In this document: piece after piece, positions 3,046 to 38,439 of the stretch
Numbering within the stretch: the first letter of the stretch is position 1
Layout of the letters: every line of letters starts with the position of its first letter
From: Octopus bimaculoides
Taxonomy: Eukaryota
DNA: 41,682 nt
Assembly: GCF_001194135.2 (NCBI RefSeq)
Contig: NC_068982.1
Location: 91,210,790 to 91,252,471 of the forward strand
Direction of reading: 5' to 3'
Position numbers and translations under genes: made by a program
Notes under the pieces: model-generated
What the model saw: the letters and a program-made list of their open reading frames with translations, nothing else
The model's database searches: none
What the model was told of the DNA's origin: nothing

Positions 3046-3893
3046 GCGCTTAGTATATGTCTAATTTTTACAAAATATACAACTTTATCGATAATAACAA
3101 TTAAATTAAGCCTATCACATCTAAATATTACGATTTTATCGTTGTTTTTTATGAGAATTTAGTCTTAGTGTTTTATGTTAATTGCATATTTATTGTGTGT
3201 GTGTTTAGACACACATACATACACATAAACACATACAGACATACACACACATGCACACATACACATACATACACGCATACAAACTCACATGCATACACAC
3301 ACATGTCAATTATAATACTAAATATTTTGGAAAATCGCGACGCGACTGGAAATCGTAAGAAGACACGGAGATTAAGACCCGCCCGCCTTAACTCGAGCAG
3401 AGAGTAATGACACCTCCTGTCCTACTTTTGATTCCACACGTCTTAAACAAGGAAATGATTATTTAGATAATATTGACCCAGACATGTTCCTCAAAAGAAG
3501 AAAGAGTCACGGCGGAAATACTTTTGATCGTATGTTTACTTGGTCAGGGTTGAACTGGAGAAGGATATGAAAGAAATTAGTAGATAATGACGACGGCGAC
3601 ATCGGTATTCGTGGCCGCTCAGCACAAATATAACTTTCATGTTGTAAATGTATGAACTGTGGTTGTATATGTGTGAGGAAGTGTTTATTTGCTGAAAAAA
3701 ATATCACTTACTTTTGAGAAGTCTCAAGCATGGAATACACACTCACATACATACATGTACACACACACACACACACACACACACACACACACACATATAT
3801 ATATATATATATATATATATATATACACATACATACATACATACATACATACATACATACATACATACATACATACACACGTACGTACGTACA

Positions 3894-4384
3894 AAAAAAT
3901 CAGTTTCCCAGCGGATGTTAACATAAAGCTGAAGATCAGCGAAAAAGAAAATAACTACACTGAACTATCGAGAGATCTATAGTTACACTATCCAGATTGC
4001 AAGTTCTGATTCATACCTGTAATTATTGGAGCACTAGGATGTGTAACGCACTGCCTATGTGCCAAACTTGAGAAATTAGGCCTCTGAAAACTAGAAAGGA
4101 GAAAACTAATTCAAAGACTATAGATTCAAGCCATCTCTGGAACTGTAAAAATTTGTAAAACTTTCCAGAAGTTTCTCATTTAAGTATCTATGAACATGCC
4201 TAGATATGCAACTATATGCATGAGAATGCATACATAAAACGAAACATACAAATCTGCACATATACATACATGCATACAAAAATACCCTGTTGGTGTTGAA
4301 ATTCCAATGATGGAGCCTTGGATCTAAGTTAGAAACCGGCTCTTTCTCTATTGGCAAGAAATCTTGAAATAAAACTGAATAATG
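3894..4384 (+). mobile_element. R4/Dong-like non-LTR retrotransposon, 5'-truncated 3' end (REL C-terminus + 3'UTR), copy A
   Basis: Translates SFPADVNIKLKISEKENNYTELSRDL*LHYPDCKF*FIPVIIGALGCVTHCL..IQAISGTVKICKTFQKFLI* (stop 4181-4183), close to the C-terminus of the copy at 36556-38383. The 3'UTR ends AAATAAAACTGAATAATG. Flanked by (TACA)n at ~3826-3877 and (CATA)n at 4386-4457. Confidence 0.9.
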
Positions 4385-4677
4385 ACATACATACATACAT
4401 GCATGCATACATACATACATACATACATACATACATACATACATACATACATACATACGAGTGGACAAACGAAGGGAAATAGCCCTCAACACACATCGGT
4501 GAAGTTGTATTTATTGAGTTAGTTCCTCGTGTTAATTAAAATGTCGTGGACGGGAAAAGCACAAGCAGTTCCTTGGGCATTCAGAAGCAAATACCGACAT
4601 CCTCTCGATTCTACCACACTTTGATTCAGCTGTCACATCCAGAATGTCAAAGTGAGAGAGAGGAGGGAAGAGAGTAA

Positions 4678-4785
4678 GAGAAAGACAGAGAGAATGAGAA
4701 AGACAGAGAGAATGAGAAAGACAGAGAGAATGAGAAAGACAGAGAGAATGAGAAAGACAGAGAGAATGAGAAAGACAGAGAGAAT
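4678..4785 (+). repeat. 18-bp minisatellite (GAGAAAGACAGAGAGAAT) x6
   Basis: Six perfect tandem units read directly. Confidence 0.95.
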
Positions 4786-35232: not shown

Positions 35233-36455
35233 TACAAGCTTTTTTAGCTGCTATTTCTGAACTTCGGTATATGGTGAAGCAAATATTTGCTGATCCCTTA
35301 ATTATATTTATAAATATATATGAGCTTTTAAATAAGTTCTCCACCAATAATGGTGCTTTCATACCGATGGGCTTGGTAAAAATTGTTAACTGGTAATTGA
35401 TTTATTAATTAGTAAATTGATAATCCTTTACCCTTTTAATTTGTACATATATATACATGTATGTATGTATATATACATGTGTGTGTGTGTTTGTATATGN
35501 NNNNNNNNNNNNNNNNNNNNNNNNNNNNNNNNNNNNNNNNNNNNNNNNNNNNNNNNNNNNNNNNNNNNNNNNNNNNNNNNNNNNNNNNNNNNNNNNNNNN
35601 NNNNNNNNNNNNNNNNNNNNNNNNNNNNNNNNNNNNNNNNNNNNNNNNNNNNNNNNNNNNNNNNNNNNNNNNNNNNNNNNNNNNNNNNNNNNNNNNNNNN
35701 NNNNNNNNNNNNNNNNNNNNNNNNNNNNNNNNNNNNNNNNNNNNNNNNNNNNNNNNNNNNNNNNNNNNNNNNNNNNNNNNNNNNNNNNNNNNNNNNNNNN
35801 NNNNNNNNNNNNNNNNNNNNNNNNNNNNNNNNNNNNNNNNNNNNNNNNNNNNNNNNNNNNNNNNNNNNNNNNNNNNNNNNNNNNNNNNNNNNNNNNNNNN
35901 NNNNNNNNNNNNNNNNNNNNNNNNNNNNNNNNNNNNNNNNNNNNNNNNNNNNNNNNNNNNNNNNNNNNNNNNNNNNNNNNNNNNNNNNNNNNNNNNNNNN
36001 NNNNNNNNNNNNNNNNNNNNNNNNNNNNNNNNNNNNNNNNNNNNNNNNNNNNNNNNNNNNNNNNNNNNNNNNNNNNNNNNNNNNNNNNNNNNNNNNNNNN
36101 NNNNNNNNNNNNNNNNNNNNNNNNNNNNNNNNNNNNNNNNNNNNNNNNNNNNNNNNNNNNNNNNNNNNNNNNNNNNNNNNNNNNNNNNTACAAGCTTTTT
36201 TAGCTGCTATTTCTGAACTTCGGTATATGGTGAAGCAAATATTTGCTGATCCCTTAATTATATTTATAAATATATATGAGCTTTTAAATAAGTTCTCCAC
36301 CAATAATGGTGCTTTCATACCGATGGGCTTGGTAAAAATTGTTAACTGGTAATTGATTTATTAATTAGTAAATTGATAATCCTTTACCCTTTTAATTTGT
36401 ACATATATATACATGTATGTATGTATATATACATGTGTGTGTGTGTTTGTATATG
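35233..36455. other. Probable assembly artefact: identical 267-bp sequence on both sides of an N gap
   Basis: 35233-35499 is identical to 36189-36455, and each copy abuts the gap 35500-36188. Confidence 0.85.
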
Positions 36456-36555
36456 TATGTATGCATGCATGTATGCATGCATGTACGTATGTATATGCGT
36501 GTATGTGTGTTTGTATGTATGTATGTATGTATGTATGCATGTGTATGTGTATGTG

Positions 36556-38383
36556 TATGTGCAGAATTGTATGTTTTATAAATGTATTCTCATGCATATA
36601 GTTGCATATCTGAACATGCTCATATATATTTAAATGATAAAATTTTGGTAAGTTTTACAGATTTTCACAGTTCCAGTGATGGGTTAAATCTGTAGTCTTC
36701 GGATTAGCTTTCTCCTTTCTGGTTTTGAGAAGCCTAATTTCTAAAGATTGGTATTTAGGCAGTATGCTACACATCCCAGGGCCTCAATAATTACAGGTAT
36801 AAACCCCAGCTTGTAATCTGGATAGAGTAACTGCAGATTTCCCAATAGTTCAGCATAGGTGTTCTCTTTTTCACTGATCTTCAGCTTTATGTTAACATCT
36901 GCTGGGCAACTAATTTCCACAACTGTGCACAGTTTCTCTTCTCTATCCCAAATCATTATATCAGGTCTGTTGTGCTTACATTTTATTGAAGTCTTCACTG
37001 GTACATTCCACCAGAATTCCTTTTCATTAAGTGTGGCTGTGGCTTCTATCATATTGCGGGTTCTTATTTCTTTGTCCTCGGGATTATCCTTCCGGCGTAT
37101 TTCATTATAGAGTGCCCTAGCTACAACGTCATGTCTCATCGGTAGATAATACCGTGATGACATTTTCAGACAACTGCTTACGATGTGGGTGATATCTTCA
37201 GTGTGAACTCCACAATGTCTGCATCAGTTGTCACTCTTTATGGCTTTTCCTACATCTCTATCCCTTTTGTGCATCGGGTATTTGGTTGATATTTCCTGTT
37301 CCTGGATTGCAACCGCATACTCTTCTATTGGTCCATGATAAACTGCTTTGATGATCGATGTTACTATCATCACGAAGCTTTCTACTAACATATCCATGCA
37401 TAGTCTTCTACTCATATAGGCCCATCCTTTCATCTGATGATACGTTGCAGTAGAGTTGTGCGACTTCTTTGGCCATGTATTCTAGGTTATCAGACAAAGA
37501 GTGTTGCTCAAGGAGCTGCCTTCCAAGTCTTATGACGTTATCAACTCCATGTATGCAAACTTGCTCAAGGTATGCACTGCGACACTTGGTGGTTAAAAGA
37601 TGTTGCCGAAGGGATATGATGCGACATTAAAAGGCATTTTGAATTGATGTTAAGCCTCTTCCTCCATGTTTTCCTTTTAGATAGAGTCATTCTATATCAC
37701 TGTTTATGTGGAAATTATGTGTGCTTGTTAGTATTTTTCGGGTTTTCACATCAATGGCTCGAATCTTATCAAGCGTCCAATCAAGCAGCCTAAATGTCGG
37801 TATGAGTATTGGCACTGCAAACACATTGTAGGTCACTGTTTTATTGAATACAGAAAGCTCTGGGGTCCAAATTTTCTTTATTCGGCTGTCATATTCTTTA
37901 GTGACACGTGTTTTGTTACAGATGCCACTGTAAGATATAACAACATTTAACCTGACCAAACGCCAACCCCACATCCTTTGAGAATGTTGTAACTAGATCA
38001 AGGCTCTTTTTCATCTTATGCATATTCTTTGCATAAAGTTTTAAGTCATCCACGAAGAAACAGTGTGTAATTTTGGTATTTTTGTTTCCTTGTGAACCAG
38101 TGAGATATCCTTCAGACTTCCTTAACATGAATGACAAGGAGTTTACAGAAAGTATAAACGACATCACAGAGAGGCTGTCTCCTTGGAATATGCCTTTGCG
38201 ATACTGTGTTCTATCGGTGATAATACAGTCACTCTTTGTGTTTAATTTCAAGATGGTGGCCCACAATGAAGTCAGCTCAGCTATGGCTTTGATTATTCTC
38301 ACTGGAACTTTAGCACGTTGAAGGGCTTCTAGCATCCATAAGTGGGAAACAGAGTTAAAGGCTTTCTTGCAATCTAGCCACAT
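36556..38383 (-). mobile_element. R4/Dong-like non-LTR retrotransposon, 5'-truncated (RT, CCHC knuckle, REL endonuclease, partial 3'UTR), copy C
   Basis: RT motifs WLDCKKAFNSVSH, GIFQGDSLS and FFVDDLKLYAK; *LYLKGKHGGRGL; CRHCGVHTEDITHIVSSC (CX2CX8HX4C); RHDVVA..HNRPDIMIWD..VEISCP..EKENTY (PD-(D/E)xK). Stop at 36630-36632. (TACA)n at the 5' junction; degenerate CATA-type array at the 3' end. Confidence 0.93.
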
Positions 38384-38439
38384 TATATGTATGTATGTAT
38401 GTATGTATGTATGTATGTATGTATGTATGTATTATATGT

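Follow-up and report, generated by a model that had tools for sequence, protein, structure and literature searches.

The stretch of DNA analysed here (the window) comprises 41,682 nucleotides of the Octopus bimaculoides genome (NCBI RefSeq assembly GCF_001194135.2, contig NC_068982.1, positions 91,210,790 to 91,252,471 of the forward strand), and coordinates below count from its first nucleotide unless a locus in another assembly is named. It is eukaryotic, AT-rich DNA, very rich in simple repeats and interrupted by nine N gaps, and it carries four remnants of long interspersed nuclear elements (LINEs), designated A to D, which are old, dead, 5'-truncated insertions of a non-LTR (long terminal repeat) retrotransposon family lying next to arrays of the microsatellite (ACAT)n. 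The 34-kb span over which they are scattered represents four separate insertions, so that its continuity across the assembly gaps is irrelevant to the finding. Considering these copies together with their relatives in other assemblies, we conclude with high confidence, short of certainty, that (ACAT)n is the specific insertion target, entered in one orientation, of a LINE family of R2 type that belongs to the R4/Dong clade or lies beside it.

Copies of the LINE family in the window

Copies A, C and D are 5'-truncated copies of one LINE family encoding a reverse transcriptase (RT), a CCHC knuckle and a restriction-like endonuclease (RLE). The longest, copy D, occupies 36561-38385 on the minus strand, close to the limits of 36556-38383 given in a first-pass annotation of the sequence, and contains the RT, a linker, the CCHC knuckle, the RLE, C-terminal helices and a partial 3' untranslated region (3'UTR). 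Aligned with a full-length relative of 1163 residues, it spans residues 536-1163, with the 5' truncation lying in the RT. The RT retains the FVDD active-site motif and matches Pfam RVT_1 (E 1e-13), the knuckle reads CRHCG...H...C and the RLE reads RPD...VVEIS...SEKENTY, while the reading frame is broken by at least two frameshifts and several stops. On its 5' side copy D abuts a (CATA)n array (38386-38440, minus strand), beyond which lies a tRNA-like short interspersed nuclear element (SINE) and no other copy; on its 3' side an imperfect (ACAT)n-type array (36413-36560, minus strand) stands in place of the last ~106 nt of the 3'UTR.

Copy A (3894-4384, plus strand) is 82.5% identical to copy D at the DNA level, was matched in tblastn at E 4e-27, is truncated at its 5' end inside the endonuclease domain and runs through the 3'UTR. 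Its coding remnant (3896-4180, plus strand) reads ...SFPADVNIKLKISEKENNY...FIPVIIGALG...GTVKICKTF and is followed by a 3'UTR of ~200 nt (4184-4384, plus strand), which terminates in ...CTGAATAATG. Within this 3'UTR are an internal ACAT-like tract (4257-4278, plus strand; CACATATACATACATGCATACA), at the equivalent point of which the homology of copy D stops, and a conserved hairpin (4315-4340, plus strand) of the form GCCTT-stem-loop-stem-CGGC. The copy is bracketed by (ACAT)n arrays at 3823-3893, whose last units are degenerate (CACGTACGTACGTACA), and at 4385-4458, both on the plus strand. An 18-bp minisatellite (AGAGAGAATGAGAAAGAC; 7.4 copies, 96% matches) lies at 4669-4801, ~210 bp downstream of the 3' array.

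Copy C (27903-28064, minus strand; 85-86% identical to copy A) consists of 3'UTR only, namely the last 162 nt with the hairpin at 27947-27972 (minus strand), and ends in ...CTGAATAATC followed directly by ACAT. Its 3'-flanking array (27799-27902, minus strand) is (ACAT)n on the sense strand of the element, with some variant units, and its 5'-flanking (CATA)n array (28062-28107, minus strand) has no element 3' end beyond it; the 5' junction shows a CATG microhomology with the array. Copy B (26468-26669, plus strand) is highly diverged and comprises an endonuclease remnant of 26 residues (26468-26545, plus strand; LYPDYKFTFIPI), which was matched at one place by eight different family queries, seven of them in the same register (best E ~1e-3), and a 3'UTR with the hairpin at 26599-26624 (plus strand). 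It runs into an (ATAC)n array (26670-26716, plus strand) at the junction ...ACAGAAGAGCT followed by ATACATAC. Since copy B gave no blastn match to A, C or D but keeps the protein remnant and the hairpin, it is a much older or more distant member of the family. A tblastn search of the window with 13 family proteins found no remnants besides A, B and D.

These results refine the first-pass annotation, which had listed four REL-type (RLE) remnants all running into (ACAT)n at the 3' end. Copies A, C and D were confirmed by homology, whereas copy B is a diverged remnant whose supposed start at 26190 finds no support, there being no demonstrable homology to the family at 26190-26467. The canonical 3' termini of A, B and C sit directly on (ACAT)n, while copy D lacks the terminus. 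A junction that had been ascribed to copies A and B is in fact common to A and C: it is TGAATAAT(G/C) followed by ACATACATAC, that is, ...CTGAATAAT(G/C) followed by ACATACAT. The observation that three different 5' truncation points abut the repeat on the sense strand was borne out, with copy D broken in the RT, copy A in the endonuclease and copy C in the 3'UTR. Past the 5'-side arrays of the window we found unrelated sequence or a SINE and never the 3'UTR of another copy, indicating that those arrays are not the tails of upstream copies.

Abutment of copies on (ACAT)n compared with chance

Although ACAT-type arrays make up 2.0% of the non-N bases of the window, six of the eight copy ends lie on a sense-orientation (ACAT)n array, or seven if a tolerance of 30 nt is allowed. 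When four intervals of the same sizes were placed at random in the window, the chance of an end abutting a sense array was ~0.01, giving a binomial P of 1e-11 to 1e-13 for the observed ends, and none of 100,000 random placements had more than four abutting ends. Comparison with random positions thus upheld the association noticed in the first-pass annotation.

Flanking repeats of relatives in other assemblies

The window alone is unable to separate a target from an own 3' tail combined with coincidence, and relatives of the family were therefore fetched from other assemblies as loci encoding homologous proteins. The best protein match to copy D was 44% identical. Both full-length and 5'-truncated relatives (~40-60% amino-acid identity) were found flanked by sense (ACAT)n in six other assemblies, and most of those with both ends in view have (ACAT)n on both sides, often in chains of element, array and element. 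All arrays at loci L001, L008, L003, L004, L006, L010, L011 and L002 are in the sense orientation. Sense (ACAT)n abuts the 5' ends of L001, L008, L003a and b, L004b and c, L006 and L010, and the 3' ends of these elements also lie on sense (ACAT)n wherever they fall within the locus (L003b and L004c run off).

L001 and L008 (both ERZ25878469) belong to the same family, are 98% identical and have a full length of ~3.9 kb, with long (ACAT)n on both sides; their 5' ends are 58 nt apart, and both are bracketed by the repeat. At L003 (ERZ25878582), two elements, the first truncated at residue 211, are separated by 924 bp of (ACAT)n, a further (ACAT)n array precedes the first of them, and a 16-nt duplication around ACAT units lies at the 5' junction of L003a. 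L004 (ERZ25072740) has three elements with (CATA)n between them, one truncated at residue 342, and L004a has (ACAT)n at its 3' end. L006 (ERZ25072740, 425-10374) has four elements; because three of the four have identical junctions (truncation at residue 356 and a 28-bp (CATA)7 spacer), the element plus its array was amplified there by tandem duplication after insertion. L010 (ERZ17082947) has (ACAT)n at both contig ends and L011 (ERZ2271971) at the 3' end. The octopod Argonauta hians (L002) is a weaker case than the other loci, with an (ACAT)n array 843 nt upstream of the open reading frame (ORF) and a decayed ACAT/AC array at the 3' end. Overall, sense (ACAT)n flanks both sides of elements with many different 5' ends in seven assemblies.

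Three further observations concern these searches. The same ~70-bp sequence (CAAGGCTGAGTCTCTACTGGACTACACCTTATGTTT...GGTGCTGG) occurs on both sides of L001 (2427-2504 and 6806-6873) beside (GATA)n; it lies outside the arrays and is no target-site duplication, and L001 probably inserted into a site that already belonged to a repeated (GATA)n-unit-(TACA)n structure. The only Rfam matches, those of mir-297 to the arrays of L001 (2501-2764 and 6700-6772; E down to 4e-6, far below the gathering score), are a low-complexity artefact. A metagenome scan with a 21-nt word of the 3'UTR yielded two bacterial loci (L013 and L014), which are chance matches.

Related lineages flanked by other repeats

Related lineages at L005 (3387-9895) and L007 (3318-7754) have (ACTT)n on both sides, and one L005 copy, truncated at residue 993, is still bracketed by (ACTT)n. 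L005 shares its assembly with L001 and L008, both flanked by ACAT (L007 comes from another one), which indicates that the flanking repeat follows the lineage of the element and not the commonest microsatellite of the genome. L012 (3725-3751) has (AC)n at its 3' end and then the 5' end of another element. In a neighbour-joining tree, copy D and all elements flanked by ACAT, ACTT and AC form one clade with 100% bootstrap support, Dong being the only outgroup. Support within the clade is weak, and the separate positions of the two (ACTT)n elements suggest either repeated target switches or poor resolution. The window statistics, the independent loci and the (ACTT)n control together support the proposal of the first-pass annotation that a repeat found at variable 5' breakpoints is a pre-existing target and not the element's own tail.

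Weighing the alternative explanations

A purely passive association would arise if non-specific insertions survived in microsatellite-rich, low-recombination DNA, or if ACAT-like seeds at the ends of the element grew into arrays once it had inserted. Such an explanation has been put forward for Waldo-A and Waldo-B near CA repeats in Drosophila (PMC3812793), it agrees with the abundance of simple repeats in the window, and the internal ACAT-like tract of the 3'UTR evidently did interact with the flanking array in copy D. It accounts poorly, however, for abutment that is base-exact and not mere proximity, for 5' truncation points in coding sequence without an ACAT seed, for the (CA)n/(TG)n arrays that are numerous in the window, none of which flanks a copy, and for the related lineages that carry a different repeat on both sides in the same assembly. 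We consider it very unlikely.

Another explanation holds that (ACAT)n is only the element's own 3' tail, made or brought along by the RT as happens in many LINEs that end in simple repeats, with no target specificity, and that the 5' repeats are coincidental or are the leftover tails of neighbours. The 3' side of every copy does end in (ACAT)n, chains of element, array and element do occur, and seven of the ten ACAT arrays of at least 40 bp in the window touch a copy, so that the elements could be the source of the arrays. Yet ~15 different 5' ends, among them seven truncations at distinct residues, abut one repeat, always in the same orientation; in the window, a 5' end would fall on such an array by chance in ~1% of cases, and what lies past the 5'-side arrays is not another 3'UTR; the head-to-tail chains themselves need insertion into the array of the previous copy; and the repeat type is lineage-specific. 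With so much set against it, an origin of the arrays in the tail alone is most improbable. An assembly artefact, in which draft contigs end or are misjoined at microsatellites and the abutment is only apparent, is scarcely credible, for although several of the N gaps lie beside simple repeats and one (28568-28577) with identical 37-nt flanks probably reflects an overlap error, none of the eight junctions is near a gap and the same architecture occurs inside contigs of 69 kb to several megabases in other assemblies (L001, 68.8 kb; L003, 4.3 Mb; L008, 5.0 Mb).

No gap falls inside a copy or at any of the eight junctions: the gap nearest to copy C (27486-27679) is more than 100 nt past its 3' array, and that nearest to copy D (35500-36188) is more than 220 nt past its 3' array. 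The 10-N gap at 28568-28577 lies within a tRNA-like SINE, with the 37 nt of 28531-28567 repeated at 28578-28614, and is probably an unmerged overlap and not missing sequence.

Several points weigh against specific insertion into (ACAT)n as we propose it. In the window, the 5' end of copy B abuts no repeat, and the 3' end of copy D is not canonical, its homology to A and C ending in the internal ACAT-like tract with the last ~106 nt, including the hairpin, missing. Target-primed reverse transcription gives no 3' truncations, and the best account of the lost terminus of copy D is a later event, either deletion or slippage, involving its internal tract and the array beside it. No site in its empty state, before insertion, came to light, which leaves the earlier presence of each array an inference, and a microsatellite conceals target-site duplications. 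The sample amounts to ~15 independent elements, obtained through their proteins and not by a genome-wide census, and L006 a, b and d, as tandem duplicates, were counted as one event. The first-pass annotation had stated that the family cleaves (CATA)n; the evidence supports targeting of insertion to the repeat, whereas cleavage specificity for (ACAT)n is what the insertion pattern would imply. Two further points concern the protein: its N-terminal domain gave no significant match in Pfam searches of 17 members, in a profile search against Protein Data Bank sequences or in a Foldseek search with its three-helix model, and the placement of the family was judged by comparison with Dong and R2. 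Hero and Dong-R4 elements are both annotated in octopus genomes (PMC13282606).

Protein architecture and relationship to R4/Dong

The relatives encode single ORFs of 1133-1184 residues, and the family protein is one ORF of ~1150 residues with an N-terminal three-helix domain lacking zinc fingers, followed by the RT, the CCHC knuckle and a C-terminal PD-(D/E)xK RLE. This order, together with the lack of an APE domain, is that of RLE-type (R2-group) LINEs; Pfam RVT_1 was matched in the family, and Exo_endo_phos was not. A profile built from 19 full-length relatives matches the R2 proteins 9NL3, 9DOU and 9NL2 from the RT through the CCHC and RLE to the C-terminus (E 8e-67), whereas the same profile matches LINE-1 ORF2p in the RT only. 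In agreement with this, R2 structures were the best fold matches (template modelling score 0.6-0.73) to an AlphaFold model of the protein (mean predicted local distance difference test score (pLDDT) 83.8, predicted template modelling score 0.75).

The protein is closer to Dong than to R2. The CCHC and the PD...E/D...EK..Y endonuclease motifs of copy D and its relatives are conserved with Dong, and over residues 18-1160 the family protein is 28% identical to protein P0140 of Loxostege sticticalis (397 bits over the full length, against 101 bits, in the RT only, for the sequence match to R2). The locus of P0140 (L009) starts with (AAT)n-A followed by GCCCCCTAAAGTCCAACC, and the published 5' end of Bombyx Dong is (TAA)n followed by GCTCCCTAAAATCCTACC (PMC3774820); the agreement of flank and 5' end identifies P0140 as a genuine Dong inserted in (TAA)n. 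The N-terminal motif W..E.N...Y...GY...W...P...L..Q is common to the family and the Loxostege Dong. The family also shows the R4/Dong-clade trait of insertion into a repeated target (ribosomal DNA (rDNA) or a microsatellite), but it lacks the target of Dong sensu stricto: a (TAA)n flank occurs only at the control L009, and the flanks of the family are (ACAT)n, with (ACTT)n or (AC)n in its sisters. As far as could be judged, then, the R4/Dong-like character suggested in the first-pass annotation holds, and the sequence comparisons support a placement in, or next to, the R4/Dong clade.

The N-terminal region is modelled as three helices (block-mean pLDDT ~86-92), and the N-terminal sequences of the family show no finger pattern of cysteines and histidines. 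The best, non-significant Foldseek neighbours of this domain were assorted helix-turn-helix DNA binders, and a diverged Myb/SANT-like N-terminal domain has been reported for R4/Dong (PMC7998251). The three-helix model is consistent with such a domain, which none of the searches named as Myb.

Conserved ends of the element RNA

A hairpin lies ~45-70 nt before the 3' junction in eleven elements of the ACAT and ACTT lineages, which span the window copies A, B and C as well as L001, L002 and L003-L007. Its sequence runs from GCCTT through a 6-bp stem to a loop, in most cases TTGTT, and back through the stem to CGGC. With the structure specified by hand, pairing was found in 91.9% of cells and compensatory changes in every one of the nine pairs; the covariation score was 0.81, compared with at most 0.15 when the 3' partners were slid, and none of 500 shuffles reached 0.81. 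By analogy with R2, the hairpin is likely a protein-binding element that positions the RNA for priming.

At the other end, the motif GAGGAAGGAGCTCRCTC is common to the full-length L008 (2469-2500; ACAT) and to L005c (9896-9930) and L007 (3382-3415; both ACTT). It lies within ~15 nt of the microsatellite, and its position right after the array places the repeat outside the conserved 5' end. This motif may be part of a 5' processing element. A self-cleaving ribozyme of the hepatitis delta virus (HDV) type has been reported at the 5' end of R4/Dong (PMC3774820); Rfam gave no HDV-like match at L001 or the other loci and none in the genuine Dong control L009 either, so that this search was uninformative.

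Proposed course of insertion

The mechanism of R2 (PMC10499050) served as the model for the steps that we propose. The family protein would bind its own RNA via the conserved 3'UTR hairpin and would recognise the (ACAT)n duplex, probably through the N-terminal helical domain. The RLE would then nick the strand that reads (ATGT)n, and the freed 3'-OH would prime reverse transcription at the 3' end of the RNA, possibly aided by pairing with ACAT units on read-through RNA. The 5' end of the cDNA, often truncated, would be attached inside the array that was nicked, through microhomology or template jumping, a step that the CATG microhomology of copy C and the 16-nt duplication of L003a would fit. 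Each insertion would thereby split one array in two, and repeated insertions would build the chains of element, array and element.

Other features of the window

Copies of the tRNA-like SINE lie at 28481-28567, 32364-32464 and 38441-38560, and no tRNA was called in them by ARAGORN or Rfam; two of the three begin right after an (ATGT)n-type array, which is antisense relative to the LINE target. The segment 6439-6777 contains, in order, (GATA)n, (ACAT)n, 209 bp of unique sequence (6518-6726) and, in the same orientation, (CATA)n. The 209-bp stretch was considered as a member of the family and rejected, as it has no similarity to the family 5' or 3' UTRs. An ORF fragment at 39831-40118 (minus strand) contains the motif RYKWRHDKVLAEI, which recalls the RHD segment that follows the CCHC knuckles of LINEs, and lies beside the (ACAT)n array of 39766-39830, to which its orientation is antisense; neither Pfam nor a tblastn comparison with the LINE family gave a match. 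Two further ORF fragments, at 22610-22948 and 15967-16284 (both minus strand), resemble remnants of mariner/Tc1 transposases (for example, ...WQQDSAPCH...), with no Pfam match.

Comparison with known elements and implications

The family resembles Dong, a member of the R4 clade found in Bombyx mori, Anopheles, Biomphalaria, cnidarians and ostracods, in being a LINE with a single ORF, an RT, a CCHC knuckle and a C-terminal RLE, in having an N-terminus without zinc fingers and in inserting into a microsatellite in one orientation. It differs in that its target is the tetranucleotide repeat (ACAT)n, whereas that of Dong is (TAA)n in insects, molluscs and cnidarians (PMC7998251), in forming its own clade, well separated from lepidopteran Dong, and apparently in having a 5' end unlike the ribozyme 5' end of Dong. 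With R2, which is specific for 28S rDNA (structures 8GH6, 9DOU and 9NL2/3), it has the order of RT, linker, CCHC and RLE in common, but it lacks N-terminal zinc fingers and any detectable R2-type Myb, and its target is a microsatellite and not rDNA. The same habit of hiding in simple repeats is known for other microsatellite-specific LINEs, namely Kibi in (TC)n, Koshi in (TTC)n, Mino in (AC)n, Togen in (TG)n and some HERO families (PMC3812793, PMC4640811), which use other repeats and mostly belong to other clades or have another type of endonuclease.

A tetranucleotide target of this kind, which the first-pass annotation hinted might be undescribed, has already been published: the Waldo elements WaldoAg1, WaldoAg2 and WaldoFs1 of the R1 clade are specific for ACAY repeats, which include ACAT (PMC3812793). 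Waldo elements carry an N-terminal APE-type endonuclease, while the family described here has a C-terminal RLE and no APE domain and thus falls outside Waldo; the (ACAT)n target common to the two is convergent. Dong-R4 LINEs are abundant and recently active in octopus genomes, as reported in studies that do not state their target (PMC13282606, PMC8967140, PMC10294476, PMC9115989). Our literature search found no RLE lineage of R4/Dong type with (ACAT)n or (ACTT)n as its specific target, although Repbase or Dfam entries may already record the target, and nothing on the target preference of octopus or other cephalopod Dong-R4 LINEs. The repeat (ACAT)n is therefore a new target for a known kind of element, microsatellite-specific RLE LINEs being already established and the (TAA)n of Dong the classic case. 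The finding overturns nothing, the ACAY target class being known for the unrelated APE-type Waldo.

If confirmed, specific insertion into (ACAT)n would account for the location of these elements in simple repeats and for the difficulty of assembling them, and it would call for caution where (ACAT)n loci serve cephalopod studies as single-copy markers. A set of close protein relatives directed to different 4-bp repeats would also provide a comparative system for the choice of DNA by R2-like proteins, a question now relevant to R2-based gene insertion, and this set of proteins is the main value of the finding. More speculatively, the elements may represent a single radiation of RLE LINEs, nearly identical to one another, whose target has changed repeatedly among (ACAT)n, (ACTT)n, at two places in the tree, and perhaps (AC)n, an idea that we put forward as a tentative one, with the odds against it. 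If it is true, the 4-bp repeat unit would be read by a small part of the protein that can be swapped, presumably the three-helix domain at the N-terminus, and the lineages would be naturally "reprogrammed" variants for studying, and borrowing, target recognition in R2-like insertion machines. The splitting and re-seeding of arrays by such elements would then shape the (ACAT)n landscape of cephalopod genomes.

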